Positions 8,508 to 56,500 of a stretch of 64,000 nucleotides of DNA are shown one piece after another. Under the pieces are notes generated by a model that worked only from the letters and a program-made list of their open reading frames with translations, was not told the origin of the DNA and searched no databases. The stretch comes from Octopus sinensis (Eukaryota). Positions within the stretch are counted from its first letter, which is position 1; every line of letters starts with the position of its first letter. The stretch lies in contig NC_043010.1 of the NCBI RefSeq assembly GCF_006345805.1, positions 5,952,001-6,016,000 on the forward strand. The letters run 5' to 3'. A program made the position numbers and the translations under genes.

Positions 8508-11151
8508 TTGTGTGTCTGTGTTTGTCCCCCTAGCATTGCTTGACAACCGATGCTGGTGTGTCTATGTCCCCGCCACTTAGTGGTTCGGCAAAAGAGACCG
8601 ATAGAATAAGTACTGGGCTTACAAAGAATAAGTTCCGGGGTCGATTTGATCGACTAAAGGCGGTGCTCCAGCATGGCCGCAGTCAAATGACTGAAACAAG
8701 TAAAAGAGAAAGAGAGAAAGGATCTACATTTCAGAGAAAAAGATATTGAAAGCATCTCACCTGTTGATGTCGTCTTAAAGTCAGATCCTCCCATCTACCA
8801 CCTGATATAGCTGTGTAGAGAGAATTTTTCCTGTACACCATTGCTTGTTCAGATTCCTTCAGATCTTTCTCCATTGTGTTCTGAACTCCAGGAGCAACAC
8901 AAATAGGATTGGACACATATCTTGATTGCATGTTTAATGCTGGTGTGACATTGTAGAACATAGATCTACTCTCATAGTTGTTGTCTGTCTGCTTCAGTCT
9001 ATGAACTATACAGATTGATATGGAGATCACTATGACAACTGATACGATCACAGCTGCTATAACAATAACAATCATCACATTCAATTGGAGACCATTACTT
9101 GATTCTGTTGTTGTCTTTGAAGGGGCCTTAAATATCTTTGATGTGCTGTTACTAACTGTGAGAGTCAAAGACAAAGTTGTTGTCGATGACAGAACTGGAC
9201 TGCCACTGTCTTTCACACCTAATTCCAGTTCATAGAATCCAGCATCATTTTGGTAAAGTGAGCGAGAGAAAGATAAGACACCAGAGTGATGGTTCATTTG
9301 AAATAAGTGTTTCTCATTACCTCTGAGTATTTCATATGTGAGGAAGGCATTGTGTTGACTGTCTCTGTCGGAGGCCCTAACAACTGTGATATCATGGTCA
9401 GAGTGGGGATGGTAGTGGACATTAAGACTGAAAGGGTCAACATTAGGGAAACTGAAATAGGGAGCATTATCATTTAAATCCATAACCTCAACAACAACAT
9501 TTGCTCTCTTCTCCAGTGATGGTGTTCCTTTATCTTTTACTAAAACCTTAAACTCATACAGGTTCTTTTCTTCTCTGTCTAGGGACTCAGTTGTGGAAAT
9601 GAATCCCACATCAGATATCTGAAATGGTAGAATATCTTTTCCATTAGATAATAGAGAATAGGTTAATTGTCCTCCGTCTCCAATATCTGGGTCTGTGGCA
9701 TTGACATATCCAACAGGGAAGTCTTTGTGTTCATTTTCATAGGTGAGAAACTTAAATATGTCCTGACTAAACTGAGGTTGTACATCATTTATGTCAGTGA
9801 CCAGCATTGAAAACTGTTTCTCTACTTTCAATGGAGGTAAACCATTATCTTGACATTTAATGGTGAAATTAAATCTCTTCTCACTCTCTCTATCTATTTC
9901 ACTCTTGACAACAACTTTGTATTTCTTTTTAGAAATTAAAATTAGCTGAAGATATCTATTTTGTAAATGACATTTCACTCGACAATTTTTTCCATTGTCA
10001 TTGTCAGTAACTTTGACATAAGCAACAAAGCTGTGAATTTTAGCTGCTTCTGAGATGACAGCTGTGTTTCCAGTTGACTCTATAACAAATTTGACATCAA
10101 TGTTTGGTGGATTATTACGATGTGTGACACCATTTATAAGGACGGTGGCTGTTGAGGACATAGGTATTTTACCATTATCTCTAGCTTCAACAACCAATTT
10201 ATAGGATTTTTTAAACTTGTATTCTTTCGTTATATGCATTTCTCCTGTTATTTCATCTAAAGTAAAGCATTGTTTAAATTTATTTAGTGTTTTAGCACTA
10301 AAAGCATAAGAAATTCTTCCATTTTCCCCTTCATCTATGTCTGCTGCAGACAGTCTTACAATAGGCTTGTTCATTTGATGTGTGTCATTTAGAGTCACAT
10401 TGTAGATATTTTGGGAAAATACAGGGAAATTATCATTTTTATCTTCCACTAAAATTTTGATGTCCAGTATACCTTCTTTTGGTGGAGATCCCCCATCTGT
10501 GGCAATCAGCTGAAGATTATAAATGCTTTTAGTCTCACGATCTAAGTTACCTTCTAAATTCAGTTGTAATAATTGACTTCCATCTGTTTTTTTAGAAACA
10601 AACAATTTGAAAGAAGTATCTTCATTCTCTACAAGTTGATAAGAGATTTTAGAATTCTGAATACTGACATCATTGTCAATGGCATTTGGAATTATTTCTT
10701 TTGTTCCAGCCAATACATTTTCATCAAATTGTATTTGAAATTCATTATTTGGAAACACTGGATAATTGTCATTGACATCGCCTATCATAAATTTGAATTC
10801 TAATATCTTGATTAAGGACTTGTCATGTTGAATTGCTACATCAAATATCCTGAAACATTCCACGTTATATCGACATAGAGATTCTGCATCCAATATGGCA
10901 GCTGAGTACAGTTTTCCTCCAGGTGTAACATTAAACAATTGAACAGTTTGATCAGTACTATCCCGGAGTATATTAAATGTCAGTTTGCTTCTATTAAACT
11001 GGGACTGTATATCATCCATTAAGTGTGTATCAGTGAAAATATTTCCAATATAGCTGTCTGTATCATTGTTCTCTTTCACATGGTAGATATGATCCACACA
11101 CCAGCAGTTGTTAGCCACCAGCACCACAATCAACAAAACCATTGAAAACAT
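2682..11151 (-). CDS. Pcdh: Protocadherin G1, join(complement 8761..11151, 7384..7531, 2682..3061), 972 aa
   Basis: Signal peptide, EC1 with C-x5-C, six cadherin repeats (DxNDN, LDRE, AxDxG motifs), TM VIVIAAVIVSVVIVISISICIV. Acceptor ttacag at 11252 and donor CAG|GTGAGA at 8761/8760; acceptor tttcag|ATG at 7531 and donor G|GTAAGT at 7384; acceptor tttcag at 3061; TAA at 2682-2684. Exon lengths 2391+148+380 are in frame. Confidence 0.93.
3351..3790 (+). mobile_element. Solo LTR, 440 bp (Ty3/gypsy-like by its 4-bp TSD)
   Basis: TGTA...TACA termini, CTCT duplication at 3347-3350 and 3791-3794, AATAAA at 3669-3674, GC-richer than its flanks. Confidence 0.7.
4703..4935 (+). mobile_element. tRNA-derived SINE, family A
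   Basis: A/B-box-like head (TGGCAGAAACGTTAG...GAGTTCAAATTCC). Close copies at 26758-26987 and 33788-34027. Confidence 0.8.
5434..5802 (+). mobile_element. Non-autonomous Helitron
   Basis: Starts TC(TCTATATATATAAA) after an A, ends with a perfect 18-bp hairpin and CTAG before a T; no TSD. Confidence 0.72.
7057..7275. mobile_element. piggyBac-like MITE
   Basis: TTAA flanks (7053-7056, 7276-7279) and TIRs CCCTTTAGT / ACTAAAGGG. Confidence 0.7.
7592..7978 (+). mobile_element. Non-autonomous Helitron (second family)
   Basis: A|TCTTTATATATAAAAG start; subterminal CCCGAGCAACGCC hairpin remnant; CTAG|T end. Confidence 0.68.
8298..8720 (+). mobile_element. tRNA-derived SINE, family B, with internal (TA)n/(TG)n
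   Basis: GGAGTGGCTGTGTGGTAAG...GGTTCAGTCCC head, CTTGGGCAAGTGTCTT core, GGCGGTGCTCCAGCATGGCC...GTAAAAGAG tail; several copies in the window. Confidence 0.82.
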
Positions 11152-18300: not shown

Positions 18301-21300
18301 GCTTACATTCTGCACTGAGGTGCTTTAGAGTGCCAGTTGTTGATATTTTCCTATCAACAAGTCTGGCAGTTCTGTACTCACGAAGACAAGAGGAAGGAAA
18401 ATTCCCTTATATGAAAAGTGGGTAAGTATTAATGTAAGGTACAAACAGTCAACATAAAACAATTCCCAATGCCACATAGATAGTACTGTAGTGAGGTCAT
18501 GTAAAAAGCCCCTTTGCTGATGCCACGTAAAAAGCTCCTGCACAGGTGCCACATAAAGAGCACCTGTGCTGATGCCATGTAAATAGCACCTGTGCCAGTG
18601 CCATGGAAAAAAAGCACTTATGCCAGTGCTATGTGAAAGCACCTGTCCCTGTGCTGCAAAAATACCACCTGTGCCGGTGCCACATAGAAAGCACCTGTGC
18701 AGGTGTACTGTTAAAAGTACCTGCGCTGGTGCCACAAAAAAGGCACCTGTGCCAGTGCCACAAAAAAAAAGCCCCTGTGCTGGTGCCACAAAAAAGGCAC
18801 CTGTGCCAGTGCCACAAAAAAAAGCCCCTGTTCTGGTGTCACAAAAAAGGCACCTGTGCCGGTGCCACAAAAAAAAGCCCCTGTGCTGGTGCCACAAAAA
18901 AGGCACCTGTGCCAGTGCCACAAAAAAAAAACCCTGTGCCAGTACCATGTATATAGCCCCTGTGCTGGTGCCACATAAAAACCACCTATGCTGATTCCAC
19001 ATAGAAAACAGCTTTACGAGTGTCATGTAAAAGTACATATACTGCTGCCATGTGAAAAGCACCCAGTACACACATTAAAGTGGTTAGCATTAGAAAGGGC
19101 AGCCAGCTGTAGAAACCAAGCCGAAACACATGACTGGAACCTGGTGCAGCTCTCCAGTTCTAGCCAAACCATCCAACCCATGCCAGCATGCAAAACATAT
19201 GTGTGTATTATCTGACACATGCTACAATGGAAAAAAGTGAACATTAAACAGACTGAAAGATGTATATTCGAGGTTTTACGTTATCATAAAACATCTCCTC
19301 ACATTTCAATATTCAATTCAAATACCTCTTGCTTTTGAAGAAATTTTGGGGATTTTTATTACTGACCTGGCAGTTCCTCGTAATGTCCAGCACTACCGAC
19401 ACTCCAACCATGACCACTATCAGTGTGAGATGACAATGTTGACATTTCACTGAATTGGTCAGCACCATTTAGTTCTCTGTAACCAGGAGGGATGCTTTCT
19501 TCTCTTGGAATAAACATCTGGAAAAATTTATTGCAGAGTGCAGTATACAATTACAATAATAAGAAGGATTCTAATAATCTAATATGGTGTTTCGTATTTA
19601 GCATTAGAATATTTTAAGTTATGAAATTATGAAGAACATTCTGTAATACTTATTTCTCCAAGATAAACTATGCACAAAAGCAGAATTTTCCCTGAAAGAT
19701 TTCCAAACACATGAAAATTTATGAACTCACCAGTTGTTTTCTTGAAGTTAGATCATCCCATCTATCAGCTGACATAGTTCTGCAGTAAATATTTTCCCTG
19801 TCTTCAATTGGTTGTTGAGGTTTCTTCAGATTTCTCTCCATTGTGCACTGAACTCCAGGAGGAACACAGGTAGGATCAAATATATATTTTGATTGGATGT
19901 TTAATGCAGGTGTAACCTTGTGGTACATATCAACACTGTTGTTATAGTTGTTGTCTGTCTGCTTCAGTCTATGAACTATACAGATCGATATAGAGATCAC
20001 TATGACAACTGATACGATCACAGCTGCTACAACAATAACAATCATCACATTCAATTGGAGACCATTACTTGATTCTGTTGTTGTCTTTGAAGGGGTCTTA
20101 AATATCTTTGATGTGCTGTTACTAACTGTTAGAGTCAAAGACAAAGTTGTTGTCGATGACAGAACTGGACTGCCACTGTCTTTCACACCTAATTCCAGTT
20201 CATAGAATCCAGCATCATTTTGGTAAAGTGAGCGAGAGAAAGATAAGACACCAGAGTGATGGTTCATTTGAAATAAGTGTTTCTCATTACCTCTGAGTAT
20301 TTCATATGTGAGGAAGGCATTGTGTTGGCTGTCTCTGTCAGAGGCCCTAACAACTGTGATATCCTGGTCAGAGTGGGGATGGTAGTGGACATTAAGACTG
20401 AAAGGGTCAACATTAGGGAAACTGAAATAGGGAGCATTATCATTTAAATCCATAACCTCAACAACAACATTTGCTCTCTTCTCCAGTGATGGTGTTCCTT
20501 TATCTTTTACTAAAACCTTAAACTCATACAGGTTCTTTTCTTCTCTGTCTAGGGACTCAGTTGTGGAAATGAATCCCACATCAGATATCTGAAATGGTAG
20601 AATATCTTTTCCATTAGATAATAGAGAATAGGTTAATTGTCCTCCATCTCCAATATCTGGGTCTGTGGCATTGACATATCCAACAGAGAAGTCTTTGTGT
20701 TCGTTTTCATAGGTGAGAAACTTAAATATGTCCTGACTAAACTGAGGTTGTACATCATTTATGTCAGTGACCAGCACAGAAAACTGTTTCTCTACTTTCA
20801 ATGGAGGTAAACCATTATCTTGACATTTAATGGTGAAATTAAAGCTCTTCTCACTCTCTCTATCTATTTCACTCTTGACAACAACTTTGTATTTCTTTTC
20901 AGAAATTAAAATTAGCTGAAGATATTTATTATGTAAATGACAGTTCACTTGTCCATTTTTTCCACCGTCACTGTCAGTAATTTTGACATAAGCAACAAAA
21001 CTGCCAATTTTAGATGCTTCTGAGATGACTGCTGTGTTTCCAGTTGACTCTATAACAAATTTGACATCGATTTTGGGAGGATTGTTAAGATGACTGATTC
21101 CAGTTACAAGAACAGTGGCAGCTGAGGACATTGGTGGGTTACCATTATCCCTAGCTTCAACATACAATTTATATATCCTTCCAAATTGGAATTCTTTCTT
21201 TAGAAACAAATATCCAGTTACTTCATCTAATCTGAAAAACTGTTCAGTATATTTTGATGTTATGGCATTGAAAAAATAAGATATTAATCCATTTTCTCCT

Positions 21301-22115
21301 TCATCTAAATCTGTAGCCGACAGCTTTGCAATCGGTTTGTTTAACTGGTGTGTGTCATTTACAGTGACATTATAATTCTTCTGAGAGAACAAAGGTTTAT
21401 TGTCATTTATATCCTTAACTAATATTTTTATATGAAGTACACCTTCTTTCTGTGGTGATCCATTATCTCTGGCAATTAGCTGAATTTCATAAATGCTTTT
21501 TGTCTCACGATCTAAGACGTTTTCGAGGTTTAGCTGCAATAAATCAGATCCATCCAACTCTTTAGAAACAATCAATTTAAAAGGAGTATTTAAATCTTCA
21601 ATCTCATAAGTGATTCTGGAATTCTGAATACTGACATCATTATCAATGGCATTTGGAATTATATACTTCGTTCCTATTGAATCATTTTCATCAAATTTTA
21701 AATGAAATTCCTCATTTGGAAACTTGGGAGAATTATCATTGACATCTTCTATTATAACTTTGATTTCTATTATCTTGAGAAAGGAATGGTCATGTTGAAC
21801 AGCTATTTCCAATATTCTGAAACATTCCACATCATATTGACACAGAATCTCTGCATCCAATATGGCAGCAGTGTATATTTGTCCTCCAGGTGTAACATTA
21901 AACAACTGAACATCTCCATCATTACCACCCTGGAGTATATTAAATGTCAGTTTGTTACTATCATCCTGAGACTGAATATTATGTAGTAAGTGTGCATCAG
22001 TGACAATATTTCCAATATAGCTGTGTATATCATTGTTCTCTTTCACATGGTAGGTATGATCCACACACCAGGAGTTGTCAGCCATCAACAACACCAACAT
22101 AACTATATATAACAT
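15332..22115 (-). CDS. Pcdh: Protocadherin G2, join(complement 19731..22115, 19367..19517, 15332..15657), 953 aa
   Basis: Same domain layout. The first ATG is at 22115 (GCCATG); the track start at 22130 is TTG. Donors GTGAGT (19730) and GTCAGT (19366); acceptors at 19517 and 15657. Lengths 2385+151+326 are in frame; ends ATDV-stop. Confidence 0.93.
16199..17913 (+). repeat. ~1.5-kb minisatellite array inside a (GAT)n-tailed retroposon
   Basis: Units TGGTGCCACATAAAAATTAC (20), TGGTGCCACGTAAAATGCACTGGTGC (26), TGGTGCCACATAAAATGTAC (20) and TGGTGCCACAAAGTGCACTGGTGC (24) form 46/44/90-bp higher-order repeats, followed by the retroposon 3' end and (GAT)4. Confidence 0.9.
18465..19200 (+). repeat. 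Second minisatellite-expanded copy of the same retroposon
   Basis: Degenerate GTGCCACAAAAAAAGGCACCTGTGCCA units followed by AAGTGGTTAGCATTAGAAAGGGC...CCAACCCATGCCAGCATG. Confidence 0.8.
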
Positions 22116-22336
22116 GGCTACAGTCTTCAAGTCTGTTGCAGGGAAATATATATGTAATGTTCCTAGAAACTTTCAAAGATTTGTGACTTCTTGGATTTTC
22201 TTCTGTTGCCTCCTGCAAACCTGTAAAAACATATAAACTTATTATGCATAAGAAAGGATGTAGTAATCAAGAAAAGGCATATAATTTCTAACTGTAATTA
22301 ATGAGATATTTTATGATAGAATTAGAAATTATGCAA

Positions 22337-28300: not shown

Positions 28301-31300
28301 TTACTGCACTTGCATTTATATAAAAATACTAGTAAATGGGAGACCCATTTCGGTCATGAATGACCATGGGATTGCACCTAGAAAATCATCCTCCGAGGTA
28401 CAAGTCCAGGCAAGGGTGTTTATTGAAAGCCGGCAGTCGCCCATGCATACCAGCCTCCCCTCTCCACACCACTGATGTTATCCAAGGGAAAGGCAAAGGC
28501 CAATACAGCTTGGCACCAGTGATGTCGCAACTCATTTCTACAGCGGAGTTAACTGGGGCAACGTGAAATAAAGTGTCTTGCTCAAGAACACAACATGCAG
28601 CCTGGTCCGGAAATCGAGCTCACAGCCTCACGATCGTAAGCTCGATGCTCTAACCACTGAGCCATGCGCCTTCACAATAATAGCAATTATTTCAAATAGT
28701 GTAAATGTAATATTTCTCCAACCGTAAAGATTGTGGAAGTCAATAAATATTTGTTGCTTCTTGCAGCACTCATGTGGTGCTTTTCTCTTTTCAGTTCATT
28801 TTTTGAAGCAAATACATGCAGAGAAGACACAGGTACAATAGAGGGAACAATTGAAATGTAAAATAATGTGATTTTAAAATATTTTCTTAAAATGATTGCT
28901 CTGAAATATATAAATATAAAGCAGTTATACTTCATGCAGGAACACAAAAACAAATGAAGCATGCAACAGCCATTTTTACCTTGATATTTCAAATAAATAT
29001 AAGCAATTTACCTGTTCATGTCTGTTCAAAGTAAAATCGTTCCACTTATCACATGGCAGGGTTCTGCAGTAAGTATCTTCCCTATAAACCTTTGATTCTT
29101 GAGATGGCTTCAGTTTTCTCGACATTGTGTACTGAACTCCAGGAGGAACACAGGTAGGATCAAATATATATTTCGATTGGGCGTTTAATGCAGGTGTAAC
29201 CTTGTGGTACATATCAACACTGTTGTTATAGGTGTTGTCTGTCTGCTTCAGTCTATGAACTATACAGATTGATATAGAGATCACTATGACAACTGATACG
29301 ATCACAGCTGCTATAACAATAACAATCATCACATTCAATTGGAGACCATTACTTGATTCTGTTGTTGTCTTTGAAGGGGTCTTAAATATCTTTGATGTGC
29401 TGTTACTAACTATTAGGGTCAAAGACAAAGTTGTTGTCGATGACAGAACTGGACTGCCACTGTCTTTCACACCTAATTCCAGTTCATAGAATCCAGCATC
29501 ATTTTGGTAAAGTGAGCGAGAGAAAGATAAGACACCAGAGTGATGGTTCATTTGAAATAAGTGTTTCTCATTACCTCTGAGTATTTCATATGTGAGGAAG
29601 GCATTGTGTTGACTGTCTCTGTCGGAGGCCCTAACAACTGTGATATCATGGTCAGAGTGGGGATGGTAGTGGACATTAAGACTGAAAGGGTCAACATTAG
29701 GGAAACTGAAATAGGGAGCATTATCATTTAAATCCATAACCTCAACAACAACATTTGCTCTCTTCTCCAGTGATGGTGTTCCTTTATCTTTTACTAAAAC
29801 CTTAAACTCATACAGGTTCTTTTCTTCTCTGTCTAGGGACTCAGTTGTGGAAATGAATCCCACATCAGATATCTGAAATGGTAGAATATCTTTTCCATCA
29901 GATAATAGAGAATAGGTTAATTGTCCTCCATCTCCAATATCTGGGTCTGTGGCATTGACATATCCAACAGAGAAGTCTTTGTGTTCATTTTCATAGGTGA
30001 GAAACTTAAATATGTCCTGACTAAACTGAGGTTGTACATCATTTATGTCAGTGACCAGCACAGAAAACTGTTTCTCTACTTTCAATGGAGGTAAACCATT
30101 ATCTTGACATTTAATGGTGAAATTAAAGCTCTTCTCACTCTCTCTATCTATTTCACTCTTGACAACAACTTTGTATTTCTCTGCAGATACTAAGATTAGC
30201 TGAAGGTATCTGTTTTGTAAATGACACTTCACTTGTCCATTTTCTCCATTGTCATTGTCAGTAACTTTGACATAAGCAACATACCTGCCGGCTCGAATTG
30301 CTTCTGAAATGAGAATTGTGTTTCCAGTTGACTTTAAGAGAAACATGACATCAATATTTGGTGGATTATTACGATGTGTGACACCATTTACCAGAACAAT
30401 GGCTGTTGAGGACATAGGTATTTTACCACAATCCCTGGCTTCAACAGTTATTTTATACATTTTTCCGAATTGAAATTCATTTGTTATAAACATTTCTCCT
30501 GTTGTCTTATACAATTTAAAACACTGTTTGATTTTATTTGGAGTTTTAGCACCAAATATGTATGAAATTTTCCCATTTTCCCCATCATCTAAATCAGTAG
30601 CCAACAACCTCAGAATCGGTTGGCGCATTTGATGTGTGTCATTTAGAGTCACATTGTAGATATTTGGGGAAAATACAGGGAAATTATCATTTTTATCTTC
30701 CACTAATATTTTGATGTCCAGTATACCTTCTTTTGGTGGAGATCCCCCATCTGTGGCAATCAGCTGAAGATTATAAATGCTCTTAGTCTCACGATCTAAG
30801 TTACCTTCTAGAATTATCTGTAATACACTAGATTCATCTGCTCTCTTCAAAACAAACAATTTGAACGGAATACGTAAATCTCTTAGCTGATAATTGATCT
30901 TTGAGTTCTGAATACTGACATCTTTATCAATGGCATTTGGAAGTATTTCTCTTGTTCCTATCAATACGTTTTCATAGAGTTGCAGGTGAAATTCATTAAT
31001 TGGAAAGAAGGGATAATTGTCATTGATGTCTTCTATTATAACTTTGATTTCTAATATCTTCAGAAAAGAATGACCATGGTGAACTGCTATTTCCAATATC
31101 CTGAAACATTCCACATTATATTGACACAGAGTTTCTGCATCCAATATGGCAGCTGTGTGCAGTTGTCCTCCAGGTGTAACATTAAACAACTGAACACTTC
31201 CATCGGTACCACCCTGGAGTATATTAAATGAAAATTTGTTGCTCTCATCCTTAGTCTGTATATTATCCAATAAGTGCGTATCAGTGACAATATCTCCAAT

Positions 31301-31399
31301 ATAACTGTTTATATCATTGTTCTCTTTCACATGGTAGGTATGATCCACACACCTGCAGCTGTCAGCTGCCAACAGTACCAACAAAACTATGAATAACAT
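25340..31399 (-). CDS. Pcdh: Protocadherin G3, join(complement 29012..31399, 26263..26410, 25340..25674), 956 aa
   Basis: Six EC repeats and TM. ATG at 31399 (track start 31414 is TTG). GT-AG sites at 29011, 26410, 26262 and 25674. Lengths 2388+148+335 are in frame; ends ATDV-stop. Confidence 0.93.
26758..26987 (+). mobile_element. tRNA-derived SINE, family A
   Basis: Same sequence; 9-bp TSD GGTATTAGA at 26749-26757 and 26988-26996. Confidence 0.85.
27130..28240 (-). mobile_element. Decayed Tc1/mariner element, probably maT/DD37D-like; boundaries approximate
   Basis: Reverse-strand translation gives KRSAVIVALKA...VARSFVHKI...IRTPEFI...NPGKSMRSI and FQQDSVPSHKAQ...NIWPLNSLALNPLDYYVWS, with stops and frameshifts. 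TIRs not resolved. Confidence 0.7.
28337..28675 (-). mobile_element. tRNA-derived SINE, family D (reverse)
   Basis: Reverse strand reads GTGAAGGCGCATGGCTCAGTGGTTAGAGCATCG...GAGCTCGATTTCC (A/B boxes) followed by TTCTTGAGCAAGACACTT. Confidence 0.75.
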
Positions 31400-31621
31400 G
31401 GCTTCAGTCCTCAATTCTGTTGCAAGGATACGAATGTGTAAAGTTGATAGAATCTATCAAAGAATTGTGACTTCTTGAATATATTCTCTTTTTCTGTCCT
31501 GTAAACATGTAAACGTATTATGCATAAGAAAGGATGTAGTAATTAAGAAAATTCATATAATTTGTAAAATTATAAATTATGGCAAGGTGACAGAATCATT
31601 AGCACACCAGACAAAATGATT

Positions 31622-36857: not shown

Positions 36858-39800
36858 TTAGACGTCTGTTGCAGACAGGGGAGGAAGTGGAGGTACCTGG
36901 GGTGATGAAGGTACCTTTGGTAGTGTTGTTATTTTGGGTACAGCTGGCAGAGATGGTTTACAGTCTGAAGTAAACTGACTTTTCACTGGTACTGTAGAAT
37001 GTTGTCCAGTTATGTTAGATGTGGTCCCAGTAATAGTCAAAGGTGTTTGGTCAAACGAACAGGAAGTGTTATTATCGACATTAGGTTGATGGTGATATCC
37101 ATATTTGTTATCTCCCCTTGATCTGTTGAGTGTGTTTTGAAGTTGATTTCTTCTATTCCATGTCTGGTCACTTTGGTAACGGCACAGATCTAAAAATATC
37201 GAGATTTTATATAAATTTACTTTCCAATGAAAAATTAAACTCTTTAAAATTTCTTTCTTGCATAAAACTATTCTCCATCTGTGCAGGTTTGCTTGCAAAT
37301 TTTTAATTTCTAAGAAACAACTTGATAATTTATTGATAATGAAGAAGATAATTAAATTCAGATGGTTCTCATATTAACATTCTCATTTTTGATTATGGAT
37401 CAGTCTTGAGAAGGAATTTTGCAAGAAAAATATATTTTAAATTTTATACAATCAGTATCTTAACCCCTATTTCTGAAAGTGTTACAAATGGACAATAATC
37501 ATTAATTTGAAATTAAATCATAGTCCTTTTTATTTGGAGACTGGTGGAATGAAAGCTCCCTTGTTTGAAAAGCATTCAATGGATTAGTTACAGAAAGAGT
37601 CTCTATGTGTAAAGCACTGCCTTAATATCCTACTCATCTGACTCATGCTATCATAAGAAAAATGAACGTAAAAGGAATGAACAAACTAAATTAAATATAT
37701 GTATTACACTTTCGTTAGGAAATATGATATTTAATTTAAAAGTTTCTTACATCTGAAGAAATGCTTAGTATTTTTAACTTACCTGGTAGTTCCTCATAAT
37801 GTCCAGCACTACCGACACTCCAGCCATGACCACTATCAGTGTGAGATGACAATGTTGACATCTCACTAAATTGGTCAGGATTGTTCAGTTCTCTGTAACC
37901 TGGAGACATACTTTCTTCTCTGGGAATAAACATCTATAAATATAGATCCAATGGATCGTCATAATGTTCTGGACATTAAAAAAAAAGAAATATATCTCAA
38001 AGATTTAGACAATTCTAAGGAATTTTAATCATTGTATACTCTAAGTTCTAAACTTTCTGAAGTCTACAAGTAATTTCCTAGAAAGATGACCTCAAAACAT
38101 TAGTCGGAATATATATAGGTAATTTTTAGTATATTTTATTTACTCTGTCTCCAGGATATCTTCATCATCGCCATCTCAGAGTGCTATGACTTATGAGTTT
38201 ATAATATACAAAGAAGCTTCAATTAGTAAGAAAGAATCATATATTAAGTAATTTAGTCACCCCAGTAAACTGGGGATATGAAGAATAACAAGCAGAGTAA
38301 ATAATTCAATATGAAAACAGCAGTCGAGTTCCAAACTAACTTTTCAAATTGTATATGATAGATCATCAATATTACCCCAGTAACATAGGAAAACTATTCT
38401 ACAGATGAAAATAGCAGACCTGTTTTATTCATGTCTAATGCTGACTGCAATTGTACAGATAAAATTTACAATTGTCTAAAATACTGTGTATATAACATTC
38501 CTCCAACCACAAAGATTGCACGTGTCAATAAATATTTGTTACTTCTCAATTTCCTTTGCAGCATTCAGATGAAGTTTTTCTAGGAATAACCAAAATTGAA
38601 AAGAATGCAAAAATACATTTGGAAAAGATTGATGAACAATAAAGGGAATGATTTGAATGTAAAATAGTGAGAGTGGTCATCATCATCTTTGAACATCAGT
38701 TCTCGATGCTGACATGGGATGGAGAGTAGGACAGGAGTTAGCTAGCCTGAGGGTTGTCCATGCTTCATCTCCCTATTTTTCTATAGTTTCTATGAAGGGA
38801 TGCACTTCATAACACCAACCACATAACACAGTGGCCCCAACATGGGAACTTTTATGTGGAACCTCTATGGGCAATTTTACATGGCACCTGCAAAGGTGTA
38901 TTTACATGGTTGCAAAATGTTTGCTCTGAAATATATATAAAGCAATTATATTTCATGTAGCAACACAAAAACAAATGAAATATGCAACAACCCTTTTTTT
39001 TCTTGATATTTCAAATAAATATAAGCAATTTACCTGTTCAGGTCTGTTCAAAGTAAAATCATTCCACTTATCACATGGCATGGTTCTGCAGTAAGTATCT
39101 TCCCTATAAACCTTTGATTCTTGAGATGGCTTCAGTTTTCTCGACATCGTGTACTGAACTCCAGGAGGAACACAGGTAGGATCAAATATATATTTTGATT
39201 GGATGTTTAATGCAGGTGTAACCTTGTGGTACATATCAACACTGTTGTTATGGTTGCCGTCTGTCTGCTTCAACCTATGAACTATACAGATCGATATAGA
39301 GATCACTATGACAACTGATACGATCACAGCTGCTACAACAATAACAATCATCACATTCAATTGGAGACCATTACTTGATTCTGTTGTTGTCTTTGAAGGG
39401 GTCTTAAATATCTTTGATGTGCTGTTACTAACTGTTAGAGTCAAAGACAAAGTTGTTGTCGACGACAGAACTGGACTGCCACTGTCTTTCACACCTAATT
39501 CCAGTTCATAGAATCCAGCATCATTTTGGTAAAGTGAGCGAGAGAAAGATAAGACACCAGAGTGATGGTTCATTTGAAATAAGTGTTTCTCATTACCTCT
39601 GAGTATTTCATATGTGAGGAAGGCATTGTGTTGACTGTCTCTGTCAGAGGCCCTAACAACTGTGATATCATGGTCAGAGTGGGGATGGTAGTGGACATTA
39701 AGAGTGAAAGGGTCAACATTAGGGAAACTGAAATAGGGAGCATTATCATTTAAATCCATAACCTCAACAACAACATTTGCTCTCTTCTCCAGTGATGGTG

Positions 39801-41421
39801 TTCCTTTATCTTTTACTAAAACCTTAAACTCATACAAGTTCTTTTCTTCTCTGTCTAGGGACTCAGTTGTGGAAATGAATCCCACATCAGATATCTGAAA
39901 TGGTAGAATATCTTTTCCATTAGATAATAGAGAATAGGTTAATTGTCCTCCATCTCCAATATCTGGGTCTGTGGCATTGACATATCCAACAGGTAAGTCT
40001 TTGTGTTCATTTTCATAGGTGAGAAACTTAAATATGTCCTGACTAAACTGAGGTTGTACATCATTTATGTCAGTAACCACCACAGAAAACCGTTTCTCTA
40101 CTTTCAATGGAGGTAAACCATTATCTTGACATTTAATGGTGAAATTAAAGCTCTTCTCTCTCTCTCTATCTATTTCACTCTTGACAACAACTTTGTATTT
40201 CTTTTCAGACATTGAAATAAGCTGAAGATATCTGTTTTGTAAATGACATTTCACTTGTCCATTTGCTCCACTGTCATTGTCAATAACTTTGACAAAAGCA
40301 ACAAAACTATGAATTTGAGCTGCTTCTGAGATGAAAGCTGTTTTTCCAGTTGACTTAACAAAAAATTTGAAGTCAATGTTTGGTGGATTATTCAAATGAG
40401 TGACACCATTTACCAGAACAGTGGCAGCTGAGGACATTGGTGGGTTACCATTATCCCTAGCTTCAACAAACAATTTATATATCCTTCCAAATTGAAATTC
40501 TTTCTTTAAAAACAAATATCCAGTTACTTCATCTAATCTGAAAAACTGTTCAGTATATTTTGATGTTATGGCATTGAAAAAATAAGATATTAATCCATTT
40601 TCTCCTTCATCTAAATCTGTGGCTGACAGCTTTGCAATCGGTTTGTTTAACTGGTGTGTGTCATTTACAGTGATATTATAATTCTTCTCAGAGAACAAAG
40701 GTTTATTGTCATTTATATCCTTAACTAATATTTTAATACGAAGTACACCTTTTTTCTGTGGTGACCCATTATCTCTGGCAATTAGCTGAATTTCATAAAT
40801 GCTTTTTGTCTCACGATCTAAGACATTTTCAAGGTTTAGTTGCAACAAATCAGATCCATCCAACTCTTTAGAAACAATCAATTTAAAAGGAGTATTTAAA
40901 TCTTCAATCTCATAAGTGATTCTGGAATTCTGAATATTGACATCATTATCAATGGCATTTGGAATTATATACTTCGTTCCTATTGAATCATTTTCATCAA
41001 ATTTTAAGTGAAATTCCTTTTTTGGAAACTTGGGAGAATTATCATTAACATCTTCTATTATAACTTTGATTTCTAATATCTTAATAACAGAATAGCCATG
41101 TTGAACAGTTATTTCTAATATTCTGAAACATTCTACATTAAATTGACACAGAATTTCTGCATCCAATATGGCAGCAGTGTACAAGTGTCCTCCCTGTGTA
41201 ACATTAAATAACGGAGCTGCTCCATTTGTACTTCCCTGAACAACATTAAATGTCAGTTTGCTGTTATCGTCAAGAGATGGTACAGTATCCAATAAGTGTG
41301 TATCAATGACAATATCTCCAATGAAGCTGTGTATATCATTGTTCTCTTTCACATGGTAGGTATGATCCACACACCAACAATTGTTAACCATTAACAACAC
41401 CAACGAAAGTATGTATAACAT
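36858..41421 (-). CDS. Pcdh: Protocadherin G4, join(complement 39034..41421, 37783..37933, 36858..37189), 956 aa
   Basis: Six EC repeats and TM; GT-AG sites at positions equivalent to the paralogs; 2388+151+332 in frame. Confidence 0.93.
38675..38910 (-). mobile_element. Old reverse-oriented copy of the (GAT)n retroposon shared by units 4, 5 (47472-47712) and 6 (55371-55526)
   Basis: CATCATCATC tail, CATGCTGACATGGGATGG and CTAACACCAACCAC motifs just downstream of the large-exon donor; truncated in G6. Confidence 0.55.
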
Positions 41422-42227
41422 GGTTACAGTCTACAATTCTGTTACAAGGAAATATATGTAAAATGTTGTTGAAACCTAAGAAATAATGACTTCTTGAATA
41501 TTTTCTTCTGTTATCACCTGTAAACATATGAAACAAAAATTTATTTATGCATTAATAAACCAGAAAATTCACATCACTGAACACTGACAGTAATGAAAAA
41601 AAATTGTACCAACATTTTACAAGTTATGACAAAAAATCTACATTATCATTCCATTCTTTATCACTATATGCATTTGATAGAATTTTCAACTTATTTTCCT
41701 CCTACAGATTTAAGTTATATTTTTGTGTGCAAAAATATTATATCAATTGTATAATCTCTTATTCTTTGTAACAAACATTTCTTAAATTTTCATCATTTCA
41801 AGAACCTAATTTATACTTCAAATAAAAGAAGGAAGCATTAACATATGTTTGACTGGTCTACATCTGCTAATTTATCTTAAATTCTCATTTTGTGTACTAA
41901 GAAAGGAAGCCTACACTGACAATTAATGAACCTTTCCCAAATATCAGTCAAATCTCCCCCAAATCACAAACTATCATAATATTTAAAAAGGGGACATATT
42001 GGATAACATATTGAATACTATATATCAAAGTACAGCATGACACAAGAAAAAAAAGATATGATTATTATGGTTAGAACTGCCTCTGATTATTGATCTATCC
42101 AATTGCAAACAACATGAGATTTAAATTTTGTTTGGCAGTCAAGTAATATATAATATATAATTATGTTTCTATACATTATCCACAATCAAGTCTGATTAAT
42201 AAATGATAAATGTATTTTTCAGCAATA

Positions 42228-45660: not shown

Positions 45661-48600
45661 TTAGACGTCTGTTGCAGACAGGGGAGGAAGTGGAGGTACC
45701 TGGGGTGATGATGGTACCTTTGGTAGTGTTGTTATTTTGGGTACAGCTGGCAGAGATGGTTTACAGTCTGAAGTAAACTGACTTTTCACTGGTACTGTAG
45801 AATGTTGTTCAGTTATGTTAGATGTGGTCCCAGTAATAGTCAAAGGTGTTTGGTCAATCGAACAGGAAGTGTTATTATCGACATTAGGTTGATGGTGATA
45901 TCCATATTTGTTATCTCCCCTTGATCTGTTGAGTGTGTTTTGAAGTTGATTTCTTCTATTCCATGTTTGGTCACTTTGGTAACGGCACAGATCTAAAAAT
46001 ATCGAGATTTTATACAAATTTACTTTGCAATCAAAAATTAAACTCTTTAAAATTTCTTTCGTGCATAAAACTATTCTCAACAACAACTTGATAATTTATT
46101 GATAATGAAGAATATAATTAAATTCAGATGGTTCTCATATTAACATTCTCATTTTTAATTAGTGATTAGTCTTGAAAAGGAATTTTCCAAGAAAAATATA
46201 TTTTCAAGAAATTTTAATAGAACATTTAATACAATCAACATTAACCCCTATTTCTGAAAGTGTTACAAATGGACAATAATCATTAATTTGAAATTAAATC
46301 ATAGTCCTTTTTATTTGGAGACTGGTGGAATGAAAGCTCCCTTGTTTGAAAAGCATTCAATGGATTAGTTATAGAAAGAGCCTCTATGTGTAAAGCACTG
46401 CCTTAATAGTCTACTCATCTGATTCATGCTAGCATAAGAAAAATGAACGTAAAAGGAATGAACAATCTAAATTAAATATATGTATTACACTCTCATTAGG
46501 AAATATGATATAAAATTTAAAAGTTTCTTACAACTGAAGAAATTCTTGGTATTTTTATCTTACCTGGCAGTTCCTCATAATGTCCAGCACTACCAACACT
46601 CCAGCCATGACCACTATCAGTGTGAGATGACAATGTTGACATCTCACTGAATTGGTCAGGATTGTTCAGTTCACTGTAACCTGGAGACATACTTTCTTCT
46701 CGGGGAATAAACATCTATAAATATAAATCAATGGATCATCATAATGTTCTGGACATTCAAAAACAGGAAATATATTTCAAAAATTTAGACAATTTTAAGG
46801 AACCTTCGGTTGGGATGTTAACTTCTAAGCATTGTATACTTTGAATTCTAAACTTTCGAAAGTCTACAAATGATTTGTTAGAAGGTTGACCTCGAAACAC
46901 CAGTCGGAATATAAATAAGTAATTTTTAGTATATTTTATTTATTCTGTCTCCAGGATATCTTCATCATCGCCATCTGAGAGTGCTATGACTTTTGAGTTT
47001 ATAATATACAAAGAAGCTTCAATTAGTAAGAAAGAATTATATATTAAGTAATTTAGTTACCCCAGTAAACTGAGGATATGAACAATAACAAGCAGAGTAA
47101 ATAATTCAATATGAAAACAGCAGTCAGGTTTCAAACTAACTTTTCAAATTGTATATGATAGATCATCAATATTACCCCAGTAACATAGGAAAACTATTCT
47201 ACAAATGAAAATAGTAAACCTGTTTTATTCATGTCTAATGATGACTGCAATTGTACAGATAAGATTAGCAATTGTCTAAAATACTGTGTATATAACATTC
47301 CTCCAACCATAAAGATTGTACATGTCAATAAATATTTGTTAGTTCTCAATTTCTTTTGCAGCATTCACCTGTTTTTCCAGGAATACCCAAAATTGAAAAG
47401 TATGCAAAAATACATTTGGAAAAGATAGATGAACAATAAGGTGAATGATTTGAATGTAAAATAGTGAGAGTGGTCATCATCATCTTTGAACATCATTCTC
47501 CATGCTGACATGGGATGGAGAGTAGAACAGGAGTTAGCTAGCCTTAGAGCTGTCCATGCTTCATCTCCCTATTTTTGTATAGTTTCTATGAAGGGACACT
47601 CATCCTAACTCCAACCACTTAACACAGTGGGTGCTTTTATACGGCCCCAACATGGGAACTTTTAGGAGGAATCTCTCTAGGCAATTTTACATGGCACCAA
47701 AATGATTTATTTACATGGTACTAAAAATGATTGCTCTGAAATATATATAAAGCAATAATATTTCATACAGGAACACAAAGACAAATGAAATATGCAACAA
47801 AACCTTTTCTTTCTTGATATTTCAAATAAATATAAGCAATTTACCTGTTCTGGTCTGTTCAAAGTGAAATCATTCCACTTATCACATGGCATGGTTCTGC
47901 AGTAAGCATCTTCCCTATAAACATTTGATTCTTGAGATGGCTTCAGTTTTCTCGACATTGTGTACGAAATGCCAGGTGGAACACAGGTAGGATCAAATAT
48001 ATATTTCGATTGGGTGTTTAATGCAGGTGTAACCTTGTGGTACATATCAACACTGTTGTTATAGTTGCTGTCTGTCTGCTTCAGTCTATGAACTATACAG
48101 ATTGATATAGAGATCACTATGACAACTGATACGATCACAGCTGCTACAACAATAACAATCATCACATTCAATTGGAGACCATTACTTGATTCTGTTGTTG
48201 TCTTTGAAGGGATCTTAAATATCTTTGATGTGTTGTTACTAACTGTGAGAGTCAAAGACAAAGTTGTTGTCGATGACAGAACTGGACTGCCACTGTCTTT
48301 CACACCTAATTCCAGTTCATAGAATCCAGCATCATTTTGGTAAAGTGAGCGAGAGAAAGATAAGACACCAGAGTGATGGTTCATTTGAAATAAGTGTTTC
48401 TCATTACCTCTGAGTATTTCATATGTGAGGAAGGCATTGTGTTGGCTGTCTCTGTCAGAGGCCCTAACAACTGTGATATCATGGTCAGAGTGGGGATGGT
48501 AGTGGACATTAAGAGTGAAAGGGTCAACATTAGGGAAACTGAAATAGGGAGCATTATCATTTAAATCCATAACCTCAACAACAACATTTGCTCTCTTCTC

Positions 48601-50232
48601 CAGTGATGGTGTTCCTTTATCTTTTACTAAAACCTTAAACTCATACAGGTTCTTTTCTTCTCTGTCTAGGGACTCAGTTGTGGAAATGAATCCCACATCA
48701 GATATCTGAAATGGTAGAATATCTTTTCCATTAGATAATAGAGAATAGGTTAATTGTCCTCCATCTCCAATATCTGGGTCTGTGGCATTGACTTGTCCAA
48801 CAGGGAAGTCTTTGTGTTCATTTTCATAGGTGAGAAACTTAAATATGTCCTGACTAAACTGAGGTTGTACATCATTTATGTCAGTAACCAGCACAGAAAA
48901 CTGTTTCTCTACTTTCAATGGAGGTAAACCATTATCTTGACATTTAATGGTGAAATTAAAGCTCTTCTCACTCTCTCTATCTATTTCACTCTTGACAACA
49001 ACTTTGTAATTCTTTTCAGACATTGAGACTAACTGAAGGTATTTATTTTGTAAATGACACTTCACTTGTCCATTTACTCCACTGTCATTGTCAATAGCAT
49101 TGACAAAAGCAACAAAACTCTGAATTTGTGTTCCTTCTGAGATGACTGCTGTGTTTCCAGTTGACTTTAAGAGAAATTTGAAGTCAATGTTTGGTGGATT
49201 ATTCAAATGAGTGACACCATTTACCAGAACAATGGTAGTTGATGACATTGGTGGATTACCATTATCCCTAGCTTCAACAAACAATTTATATATCCTTCCA
49301 AATTGAAATTCTTTCTTTAGAAACAAATATCCAGTTACTTCATCTAATCTGAAACACTTTATAGCATATGTTGATGTTTTACTATTGAAGACGTAAGATA
49401 TTAATCCATTTTCTCCTTCATCTAAATCTGTGGCTGACAGCTTTGCAATCGGTTTGTTTAACTGGTGTGTGTCATTTACAGTGACATTATAAGTATTTTG
49501 GGAGAACACAGGGAAATTATCATTAATATCTTTAATAATTATTTTTATATGAAGTACACCTTTTTTCTGTGGTGATCCATTATCTCTGGCAATTAGCTGA
49601 ATTTCATAAATGCTTTTTGTCTCACGATCTAAGACGTTTTCTAGATTGAGTTGCAATAAATCAGATCCATCCAATTTTTTAGAAACAATCAATTTAAAAG
49701 GAGTATTTAAATCTTCAATCTTATAAGTGATTCTGGAATTCTGAATACTGACATCATTATCAATGGCATTTGGAATTATATACTTGGTTCCTATGAAATC
49801 ATTTTCCTCAAATTTTAAATGAAATTCCTTTTTTGGAAACTTTGGAGAATTATCATTGACATCTTCTATTATAACTTTGAGTTTTAATAACTTAATAAAA
49901 GAATGGCCGTGTTGAACAGCTATTTCTAACATCCTGAAACATTCCACATTACATTGACACAGAATTTCTGCATCCAATATGGCAGCTGTGTACAAGTGTC
50001 CTCCCTGTGTAACATTAAATAACTGGTCTGTTTCATCAGAACTTCTCTGAAGTACATTAAACATCAGTTTGCTGTTATCATCAAGAGATGGTACAGTATC
50101 CAATAGGTGTGTATCAGTGACAATATCTCCAATAAAGCTGTGTATATCATTGTTCTCTTTCACATGGTAGGTATGATCCACACACCAACAATTGTTAACC
50201 ATTAACAACACCAACCAAAGTATGTATAACAT
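45661..50232 (-). CDS. Pcdh: Protocadherin G5, join(complement 47845..50232, 46564..46714, 45661..45992), 956 aa
   Basis: Six EC repeats and TM; conserved splice sites; 2388+151+332 in frame. Confidence 0.93.
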
Positions 50233-53521: not shown

Positions 53522-56500
53522 TTAGACGTCTGTTGCAGACAGAGGAGGAGGAAGTGGAGGTACCTGGGGTGATGAAGGTACCTTTGGTAGTGTTGTTATT
53601 TTGGGTACAGCTGGCAGAGATGGTTTACAGTCTGAAGTAAACTGACTTTTCACTGGTACTGTAGAATGTTGTCCAGTTATGTTAGATGTGGTCCCAGTAA
53701 TAGTCAAAGGTGTTTGGTCAATCGAACAGGAAGTGTTATTATCGACATTAGGTTGATGGTGATATCCATATTTGTTATCTCCCCTTGATCTGTTGAGTGT
53801 GTTTTGAAGTTGATTTCTTCTATTCCATGTTTGGTCACTTTGGTAACGGCACAGATCTAAAAACAATATTAAGATTTTATATAAATTTACTTTGCAATCA
53901 AAAATTAAGCATTTGTTTCATGCGTAAAATTATCCTAAATCTATGCAGGTTTACTCAAAACTTTGAATGTTTAATGAACAACTTGATAATTTATTGATAA
54001 TGAAGAATTTAATTAAATTCAGATGTTTTTCATTTTAACATTCTCATTTTTAATTAGGGATTAGTCTTGAGAAGGAGTTTTGGGAGAATAATATATGTGA
54101 ATAAATTTCACGAGAACATTATATATATTGAATATCTTGACCTATATCTTTTTAAAGATTTGCAAATGGACACTAATCATTAATTTATAATTAAATTTTA
54201 GTCGTGTATCTATGGAGATTGGTGGAATGAAAGCTTCCTAGCTTGAAAATTAATGAATGGGTGAACAACAGAAAGAGCCACGAGGTGTAAAGCATTGCCT
54301 TAATATTCTACTCATCTGATTCATGCTAACATACGCAAAATGAATGTAAAACGAATGAACAAACTAGATATGTATTATTATATCATTAGGAAATATAATA
54401 TTAAATTTAAAAGTTTCTTACATTTGAAGAAATTCTTGGCATTTTTATCTTACCTGGCAGTTCCTCATAATGTCCAGCACTACCAACACTCCAGCCATGA
54501 CCACTATCAGTGTGAGATGACAATGTTGACATCTCACTGAATTGGCCAGGATTGTTCAGTTCTCTGTAACCTGGAGACATACTTTCTTCTCTGGGAATGA
54601 ACATCTATAAATATAAGTCCAATGGATCATCATGATGTTCTGCACATTCAAAAGAAAAAATATACATCTCAAAGATTTAGACAATTCTTAGGATTCTTCA
54701 ATTGGGAGGTTAATTTCTAATCTTTCTATAGTCTAGATTCTAAACTTTCTGAAGTCTACAAGTAATTTCCTAGAAAGATGACTTCAAAACATCAGTCAGA
54801 ATATATATATATAAGTAATTTTTAGTATATTGTATTTACTCTGTCTCCAGGATATCTTCATCATTGCCATCTCAGAGTGCTATGACTTTTGAGTTTAAAA
54901 TATTCAAAGAAGCTTCAATTAGTAAGAAAGAATCATATATTAAGTAATTTAGTCACCCCAGTAAACTGAGGATATGAACAATAACAAGCAGAGTAAATAA
55001 TTCAATATGAAAACAGCAGTCGAGTTTCAAACTAACTTTTCAAATTGTATATGATAGTTTATTAGTATTACCGCAGTAACAGAGGAAAACTATTCTACAG
55101 ATGAAAATAGCAGACCTGTTTTATTCATGTCTAATGATGACTGCAATTGTACAGATAAGATTAGCAAGTGTTTAAAATACTGTGTATATAACATTCTTCC
55201 AACCATAAAGATTGCACGTGTCAATAAATATTTGTTACTTCTCAATTTCCTTTGCAGCATTCAGATGAAGTTTTTCTAGGAATAACCAATATTGAAAAGA
55301 ATGCAAAAATACATTTGGAAAAGATAGATGAACAATAAAGGGAATGGTTCAAATGTAAAATAGTGAGAGTGGTCATCATCATCTTTGAACATCAGTTCTC
55401 CATTCCGACATGGGATGGAGAGTAGGAGAGGAGTTAGCTAGCCTTAGAGCTGTCCATGCTTCATCTCTATTTTTCTATAGTTTCTATGAAGGGACGACCA
55501 TCCTAACACCAACCACTTAACACAGTTATATTTCATGCAGGAACACAAAAACAAATGAAGCATGCAACAGCCATTTTTTCCTTGATATTTCAAATAAATA
55601 TAAGCAATTTACCTGTTCAGGTCTGTTCAAAGTAAAATCATTCCACTTATCACATGGCATGGTTCTGCAGTAAGTATCTTCCCTATAAACCTTTGATTCT
55701 TGAGATGGCTTCAGTTTTCTCGACATTGTGTACGAAATGCCAGGTGGAACACAGGTAGGATCAAATATATATTTCGATTGCATGTTTAATGCAGGTGTAA
55801 CCTTGTGGTACATATCAACACTGTTGTTATAGTTGCTGTCTGTCTGCTTCAGTCTATGAACTATACAGATTGATATGGAGATCACTATGACAACTGATAC
55901 GATCACAGCTGCTACAACAATAACAATCATCACATTCAATTGGAGACCATTACTTGATTCTGTTGTTGTCTTTGAAGGGGTCTTAAATATCTTTGATGTG
56001 CTGTTACTAACTGTTAGAGTCAAAGACAAAGTTGTTGTCGATGACAGAACTGGACTGCCACTGTCTTTCACACCTAATTCCAGTTCATAGAATCCAGCAT
56101 CATTTTGGTAAAGTGAGCGAGAGAAAGATAAGACACCAGAGTGATGGTTCATTTGAAATAAGTGTTTCTCATTACCTCTGAGTATTTCATATGTGAGGAA
56201 GGCATTGTGTTGACTGTCTCTGTCAGAGGCCCTAACAACTGTGATATCATGGTCAGAGTGGGGATGGTAGTGGACATTAAGAGTGAAAGGGTCAACATTA
56301 GGGAAACTGAAATAGGGAGCATTATCATTTAAATCCATAACCTCAACAACAACATTTGCTCTCTTCTCCAGTGATGGTGTTCCTTTATCTTTTACTAAAA
56401 CCTTAAACTCATACAAGTTCTTTTCTTCTCTGTCTAGGGACTCAGTTGTGGAAATGAATCCCACATCAGATATCTGAAATGGTAGAATATCTTTTCCATT

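Follow-up and report, generated by a model that had tools for sequence, protein, structure and literature searches.

We analyzed a 64,000-nucleotide stretch of the Octopus sinensis genome (RefSeq assembly GCF_006345805.1, contig NC_043010.1, positions 5,952,001 to 6,016,000 of the forward strand; hereafter the window). Its minus strand carries six tandem protocadherin genes, here called G1 to G6, with long open reading frames (ORFs) of ~2.4 kb that lie ~9-10 kb apart. We focused on the junction between the third and fourth extracellular cadherin (EC) repeats of their products. This junction, EC3-4, is the one place where the canonical site-1 and site-2 Ca2+ motifs are missing, in line with an earlier note on this DNA that had described a loss of Ca2+-binding motifs there alone, and the residue pattern is conserved over 244 cephalopod proteins. 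With a probability of about 0.5, we favor the reading that EC3-4 is a partially Ca2+-free linker derived from a common coleoid protocadherin ancestor, which would hold one Ca2+ instead of three and would be softer than its neighbors.

A regular-expression scan of the translations identified exactly four canonical D.ND[NV].P linkers per copy and likewise four DRE/DAE motifs, and EC3-4 has neither. The other four junctions (EC1-2, EC2-3, EC4-5 and EC5-6) carry the canonical Ca2+ motifs in all six genes, in agreement with the earlier note, and each corresponds to a canonical three-Ca2+ linker; EC3-4 does not. At EC3-4, all six copies have G[VI][TS]H[RL]NNPP in place of DxNDNxP (Table 1), and the linker strings that had been reported were found in every copy within 1-2 bases of their expected positions. 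We numbered the ligands as in classical cadherins (E11, D67, E69, D100, N102, D103, N104, D134, D136, D195). By this numbering the G1 linker changes D100 to T, N102 to R and D103 to N, and leaves N104 and P106 unchanged. On the EC3 side, the DRE motif is replaced by KEYKF, KEFQF or NEFQF and the xEx motif by NDTHQ in six of six copies. These strings are as previously described, but two of the ligands thought to be lost are, by alignment, conservative acidic swaps (Glu to Asp at xEx, Asp to Glu at DRE), and both positions remain acidic. The EC4 motifs DxD ([TI]D[NS]D) and CQDNG are retained in all six copies, which bears out the statement that EC4 still has DxD and QDNG. That the change occurs in every paralog is true of the six copies; because they are recent duplicates, however, they represent one inherited state and not six independent events.

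We aligned the copies using HMMER to four solved vertebrate protocadherins: Xenopus Pcdh8.1 (6vg1), human PCDH10 (6vg4), gamma-B2 (5t9t) and gamma-B4 (6e6b). The octopus T-H-[L/R]-N-N falls under D-x-N-D-N with no insertion or deletion, and the long segment from the linker to the EC4 xEx motif is normal for protocadherins and contains no insertion. The vertebrate EC3-4 linkers are canonical (DVNDN in 6vg1, DANDN in 6vg4, DENDC in 5t9t and DENDN in 6e6b), whereas the octopus linker is not. Because these alignments pass through the junction without gaps, we conclude that the motif loss is real and not a misalignment, which the earlier note had raised as a possible refutation. The xEx-equivalent N-D-T also doubles as an N-x-T glycosylation sequon in the context N-V-T-[LV]-N-D-T (G1 10381-10389 and its equivalents), and an N-[VI]-[TS] sequon five residues upstream of it is common to nearly all aligned relatives listed. 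From these sequons, a glycan may adjoin the non-canonical junction.

Table 1. Features of the protocadherin cluster (positions in the window).
Feature	Position	Strand	Basis
G1 EC3-EC4 linker, GVTHRNNPP	10105-10131	minus	regular-expression scan and gap-free alignment under DVNDNAP/DANDNAP
G2 EC3-EC4 linker, GISHLNNPP	21075-21101	minus	regular-expression scan
G3 EC3-EC4 linker, GVTHRNNPP	30359-30385	minus	regular-expression scan
G4 EC3-EC4 linker, GVTHLNNPP, codons 339-347	40381-40407	minus	regular-expression scan
G5 EC3-EC4 linker, GVTHLNNPP	49192-49218	minus	regular-expression scan
G6 EC3-EC4 linker, GVTHLNNPP	56959-56985	minus	regular-expression scan
G1 EC3 DRE equivalent, KEYKF (E under the DRE Asp, K under the DRE Glu)	10213-10227	minus	alignment
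G1 EC3 xEx equivalent, N-D-T (Asp at the glutamate position)	10381-10389	minus	alignment
G1 EC4 DxD (TDNDNG), site-3 and bridging ligands, retained	9991-10008	minus	motif scan
G1 EC4 top xDx (CQDNG), site-3 ligand, retained	9841-9855	minus	motif scan
Cluster EC3-4, EC3-side ligands: E11 = D; D67 = E; E69 = Q or K			
Cluster EC3-4, linker ligands: D100 = T or S; N102 = L or R; D103 = N; N104 = N			
Cluster EC3-4, EC4-side ligands: D134 = D; D136 = D; D195 = D			
G1 large first exon	8731-11151	minus	ORF list, Pfam, identity to Octopus protocadherins
G2 first exon of protocadherin	19719-22130	minus	ORF list
G3 first exon of protocadherin	28976-31414	minus	ORF list
G4 first exon of protocadherin (copy modeled structurally)	38953-41421	minus	ORF list
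G5 first exon of protocadherin	47707-50232	minus	ORF list
G6 first exon, frameshifted, two ORFs (56869-57999 and 55526-56872)	55526-57999	minus	ORF list
G1 small 3' exons	7531-7385 and 3062-2712	minus	match to O. sinensis tail
G2 small 3' exons	19517-19368 and 15676-15335	minus	match to O. sinensis tail
G3 small 3' exons	26410-26264 and 25675-25343	minus	match to O. sinensis tail
G4 small 3' exons	37933-37772 and 37190-36861	minus	match to O. sinensis tail
G5 small 3' exons	46714-46553 and 45993-45664	minus	match to O. sinensis tail
G6 small 3' exons	54604-54443 and 53857-53525	minus	match to O. sinensis tail
Seventh gene, small 3' exons; large exon past the window end	63329-63168 and 62580-62251	minus	

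To place the junction in the wider family, we assembled two sets of relatives. Set 1 (n = 126) consisted of the six copies and their best 120 database relatives, from O. sinensis, O. vulgaris, O. bimaculoides, Argonauta hians and one cuttlefish, and set 2 added 118 further relatives of a cuttlefish protocadherin. Each database search listed its best 120 matches, all of them coleoid, which sets the scope of the survey. The sets were aligned with MAFFT (126 and 119 sequences), and the ligands were counted at all five junctions (total n = 244). Relatives were obtained with full-length queries, and the EC3-4 fragment alone gave no matches in a word-indexed homolog search. An exhaustive HMMER search with an EC3-4 profile was uninformative for the survey, as its top 150 matches, ranked by summed score, were all giant multi-EC cadherins.

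DxNDN is absent from EC3-4 in all 244 protocadherins of the octopod and cuttlefish-type sets; the prevailing form of the linker in the family is V-N-V-I-N-Q-Q-N-N-[AP]-P. Position D103 is Asn in 244/244 and D100 is N, S or T in 239/244, being Asn in 192/221 sequences outside the subfamily of the cluster and Ser or Thr in 23/23 inside it. N102 is L, R or H in this 23-member subfamily, against Q, H, E or K in the other sequences, and there is almost no variation at N104 and P106. The EC3-side positions E11, D67 and E69 are variable, and the xEx glutamate position in the wider family is mostly Asn, as are D100 and D103. The subfamily stands apart in that E11 is Asp in 22/23 of its members and D67 is Glu in 19/23; other cephalopod protocadherins have N, H or S at the former position and N, K or S at the latter. 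On the EC4 side, D134 was kept in 244/244 (126/126 in set 1, 118/118 in set 2), D136 in 240/244 (124/126 and 116/118) and D195 in 243/244 (125/126 and 118/118), so that DxD and xDxG are 98-100% conserved, equal to the canonical junctions. In the same proteins, 85-100% of sequences carry the canonical side-chain ligands at the four remaining junctions, a share that reaches at least 96% at most positions; the sole variable ligand there is N104, which contributes a backbone carbonyl and is H at EC1-2 and V at EC4-5.

The feature is present in both the octopod and the cuttlefish-type sets and is therefore older than the octopod-decapodiform split. On these alignments, the EC3-4 change is one ancient inherited change and a diagnostic character of coleoid protocadherins. 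The earlier note had presented it as a trait of this subfamily and had called for a survey of the linker; the survey does not bear out that restriction, because the loss of DxNDN is family-wide.

Non-canonical cadherin linkers offer a guide to what the pattern may mean. Linkers wholly or partly free of Ca2+ form a well-known class, with examples in PCDH15, CDH23, DN-cadherin, LI-cadherin and CELSR1, and the premise that such linkers are bent or flexible is supported by published structures (PMC7547225, PMC5120219). In PCDH15 EC5-6, XEX is modified (YTD), DRE is absent (IVG), DXNDN is changed to PPNNQ and the site-3 motifs are mostly unchanged; a single Ca2+ occupied site 3 in every crystal, and the two repeats adopted three different orientations (PMC7547225). 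Octopus EC3-4 resembles this mouse/human linker in its N-N-containing, Pro-rich replacement of DXNDN and in keeping DXD and XDX. There are also differences. PCDH15 is an 11-EC tip-link cadherin under tension, whereas the octopus proteins are 6-EC protocadherins of the delta/clustered type. N102 is kept in PCDH15 but not in the cephalopod proteins. Further, unlike PCDH15 EC5-6, the octopus partial linker sits inside the EC1-4 region, which is the rigid trans-dimer surface in vertebrate relatives.

EC3-4 carries the residue signature of a linker that binds Ca2+ at site 3 only: its XEX, DRE and DXNDN are degenerate, and the repeat that follows keeps DXD and XDX intact. It does not carry that of a fully Ca2+-free linker, in which DXD and XDX of the following repeat are lost as well, as EC4 retains both. 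In the mechanism that we favor, the side chains for sites 1 and 2 are mostly lost, and the acidic cluster for site 3 at the top of EC4 (both DxD aspartates and the xDxG aspartate) is intact and under strong purifying selection. Additional site-3 ligands would come from the backbone carbonyls of N104 and of the DxDxGxN Asn. Because the EC4 cluster has been conserved while the EC3-side ligands drifted freely, we reason that it is still used, most simply to hold the site-3 Ca2+. EC3-4 would thus most likely bind a single Ca2+ at site 3 instead of three and, by analogy with PCDH15 EC5-6, would be more flexible than the canonical four in the same protein, with a linker backbone still defined by the invariant N-N-[AP]-P. 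We infer both the stoichiometry and the raised flexibility from the residue pattern and this analogy.

Several observations weigh against this interpretation. N102, a side-chain ligand of site 3, is itself replaced, so site 3 is also non-canonical. The subfamily has the two acidic residues described above (Asp at xEx, Glu at the DRE Asp), and this pair together with N344 and D383 might, to judge from the sequence, make up a second, weak site. That N100, N103, N104 and P106 hardly vary speaks for a structured rather than a floppy linker. Predicted structures also gave an extended junction. We modeled G4 residues 18-670 (39412-41370, minus strand) with AlphaFold2 from 113 aligned sequences; AlphaFold2 models no ions and hence is blind to Ca2+. 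The ectodomain model had a mean predicted local distance difference test score (pLDDT) of 82.8 and a predicted template modeling score (pTM) of 0.50. A Foldseek search matched it to EC1-6 protocadherin structures with E ~1e-57. EC3-6 crystal structures superposed on it with a root-mean-square deviation (rmsd) of 6.5-8 Å and a TM-score of 0.71-0.76, indicating that it is extended at EC3-4, and EC1-4 and EC1-6 structures superposed with an rmsd of ~50 Å only. A model of EC3-4 alone (pLDDT 88.9, pTM 0.56; the only pair modeled by itself) was likewise extended, with both domains superposing over ~220 columns on canonical protocadherin pairs with an rmsd of 3.9-6.2 Å; its orientation differed modestly from these pairs and there was no sharp kink. 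Two confidence values instead favor a softer junction: the linker block of EC3-4 has the lowest pLDDT of the five, and the pTM of the EC3-4 model is low despite its high pLDDT.

The full model bends sharply at EC2-3, whose motifs are fully canonical, rather than at EC3-4. A fold-back at this position would place EC1 near EC4 and EC2 near EC3; the bend may arise from trans-dimer (inter-molecular) covariation mistaken for contacts within one molecule, or may simply be an artefact. Since AlphaFold2 bends the canonical EC2-3 junction, the inter-domain angles of the models are not trustworthy, and we consider the model geometry to be weak evidence either way on EC3-4.

We weighed several other explanations for the pattern. 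Apo-cadherin linkers are floppy through carboxylate charge repulsion. One explanation is an "amide-locked" linker that is independent of Ca2+ yet rigid: family-wide replacement of carboxylates by isosteric carboxamides (D100N, D103N, E11N) would remove the charge repulsion, and hydrogen bonds would replace Ca2+ at sites 1 and 2, giving a fixed, near-canonical geometry with no hinge. This would account for Asn at D103 in 244/244 and at D100 in 192/221 outside the subfamily, for the essentially invariant N104 and P106, for a linker of the same length as in canonical protocadherins and for the extended AlphaFold2 models. However, the cluster itself lacks the full amide set (T/S at D100, L/R at N102), the EC3 DRE equivalent is highly variable, which is unexpected for a precisely packed network, and a solved partial linker with an NN-type sequence (PPNNQ of PCDH15 EC5-6) is flexible. 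The models also lend less than they appear to, given that AlphaFold2 is biased to canonical geometry and its geometry proved unreliable at EC2-3. We therefore regard such a lock as unlikely, although it fares best among the alternatives.

A flexible hinge with no ion at all, kinked like Drosophila N-cadherin EC2-3 or PCDH15 EC9-10, is less likely again. It would fit the absence of DxNDN and DRE, the change of the site-3 ligand N102 to L/R and the linker confidence in the AlphaFold2 model of G4, where the EC3-4 linker block had a pLDDT of 70, the lowest of the five (the others had 89, 75, 87 and 88). On the other hand, the EC4 acids of DxD and xDxG are 98-100% conserved in 244 proteins while dispensable EC3-side positions drifted, and neither model has a sharp kink at EC3-4. 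PCDH15 EC9-10 and Drosophila N-cadherin EC2-3 are like the octopus junction in the loss of XEX, DRE/DYE and DXNDN, with associated bends (PMC5120219 and work cited in it). These fully Ca2+-free linkers differ in having lost DXD and XDX too and in having special elements such as a 3-10 helix, whereas cephalopod EC4 keeps both motifs. In PCDH15 EC9-10, DXD has become AIN and XDX has become DSL, and the bend is ~90 degrees (PMC5120219). A wholly Ca2+-free form of the hinge suggested by the earlier note is thus unlikely, as the EC4 site-3 ligands are conserved like those of canonical junctions.

We also considered that the EC3-4 change was an adaptive, coleoid-wide remodeling, with amides largely substituted for the site-1 and site-2 carboxylates and site 3 kept, such that docking could differ from that of vertebrate protocadherins. 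We find this doubtful. Such remodeling could conceivably create a hinge that reorients EC1-3 against EC4-6, or a Ca2+-tunable switch. More remote is a switch by adenosine-to-inosine editing, in which an Asn AAT codon changed to GAT would restore Asp at position 103; the position-103 Asn codon in G1 is AAT. If the adaptive explanation were true, two independent "neuronal barcode" expansions would have different adhesive architectures.

Cephalopod blood Ca2+ is about 10 mM. At this high concentration, the junction could be effectively rigid if D254, E308, N344 and D383 (G4 numbering) together with backbone carbonyls held a second, low-affinity Ca2+. The acids at xEx (22/23) and at the DRE Asp (19/23) of the subfamily, unlike the residues of other cephalopod protocadherins, would suit such substitute ligands. 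We consider it improbable: even with these acids, sites 1 and 2 lack three of their five carboxylates, with D100 being T/S, and most of the family has the same linker yet lacks both acids, so that a second site is not the ancestral function. Finally, an alignment or annotation artefact, in which canonical motifs were misplaced or the ORFs were not genes, is excluded by HMMER alignments without gaps across the linker, concordant MAFFT alignments of 126 and 119 sequences, and orthologues annotated as protocadherins in O. sinensis, O. vulgaris, O. bimaculoides and Argonauta hians.

The earlier note had placed its hinge exactly between a variable and a homogenised half of the proteins. When the six genes were aligned as nucleotides, identity between copies was ~80-85% over codons ~40 to ~380, rose over codons ~390-425, remained at 98-100% to about codon 710, just beyond the transmembrane helix, and dropped again past it. 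The homogenised block thus covers the last third of EC4, EC5, EC6 and the transmembrane helix (about 39290-40150 in G4). Its boundary, at about codon 425, lies within EC4 and ~80 codons downstream of the EC3-4 linker (codons 339-347 in G4), and this distance rules out the linker as the boundary of homogenisation. Gene conversion or very recent exchange, confined to the block of codons ~425-710, could account for this pattern.

Each of the six genes encodes a signal peptide, EC1-EC6, a hydrophobic transmembrane helix and the beginning of a cytoplasmic tail. Pfam identified Cadherin (PF00028) in G1 in five stretches (E = 1.2e-71), an N-terminal Cadherin_2 and a sixth, CELSR2-like EC. Six EC repeats followed by one transmembrane helix, as defines a protocadherin, were found by Pfam, by the helix after EC6 and by the fold match, and two further hallmarks are present: a single large exon for ectodomain, transmembrane helix and proximal tail, and a tandem arrangement. 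G1 is 79-91% identical to O. vulgaris and O. sinensis protocadherins. The closest relatives of the cluster are annotated protocadherins of O. sinensis and O. vulgaris (91-94% identity), followed by those of O. bimaculoides and Argonauta hians.

A splice donor, CAG|GTAAA, was found in four copies (G3 29014, G4 39036, G5 47847 and G6 55615), and the large ORFs of these genes run past it as read-through; the final ~10 codons of the G1 ORF are probably also intron read-through. The O. sinensis orthologue continues into downstream exons. Two small 3' exons per gene encode the remaining cytoplasmic tail, with up to 98% identity to the tail of this orthologue, and a seventh gene begins to appear at the window end (Table 1). 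Because each gene has its own pair of 3' exons, duplication involved whole three-exon genes. G6 has TTTTT at ~56939 (between 56869 and 56960) where G4 has TTTTTT, a 1-bp deletion ~20 nt 3' of the linker. G6 is otherwise intact, and its EC5-transmembrane region is 98-100% identical to the neighboring copies; the frameshift means either that G6 became a pseudogene recently or that the assembly has an error in this homopolymer. Upstream of the ATG, pairwise identity was ~0.70-0.76 across the proximal ~150 nt (G4 41422-41570) and ~0.5 farther out, which suggests a conserved promoter element for each gene.

The best sequence and fold matches are the vertebrate clustered and delta-2 protocadherins. 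The octopus genes share with the clustered (alpha/beta/gamma) and delta-2 proteins six EC repeats, a long EC4 A-strand, a single large ectodomain exon, tandem clusters and homogenisation of the 3' part of the ectodomain among paralogs. They differ in their small 3' exons, a pair of which belongs to every octopus gene, whereas vertebrate clusters share constant exons. We found no discussion of the Ca2+ sites of octopus protocadherins in the literature searched, which did not include Albertin et al. 2015 and Wang & Ragsdale 2017, and the words "calcium" and "linker" are both absent from an O. vulgaris protocadherin survey.

The cephalopod protocadherin expansion is a frequently cited case of convergence on a neuronal identity code. 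Recognition by vertebrate clustered and delta protocadherins occurs through a rigid antiparallel EC1-EC4 dimer that relies on Ca2+-stiffened linkers. O. bimaculoides has 168 protocadherin genes, the product of an independent cephalopod expansion (PMC10084454). From the sequences compared here, EC3-4 is a known kind of feature, a partial Ca2+-free linker, located in the EC1-4 recognition region and fixed across coleoids; it marks coleoid protocadherins as a whole and is not a peculiarity of one cluster. If EC3-4 binds one Ca2+ and is compliant, EC4 would be coupled differently to the EC1-3 recognition module, and we hypothesize that the adhesion geometry is altered relative to the antiparallel EC1-4 dimer. 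If true, this would be a concrete structural difference between the cephalopod and vertebrate protocadherin systems.

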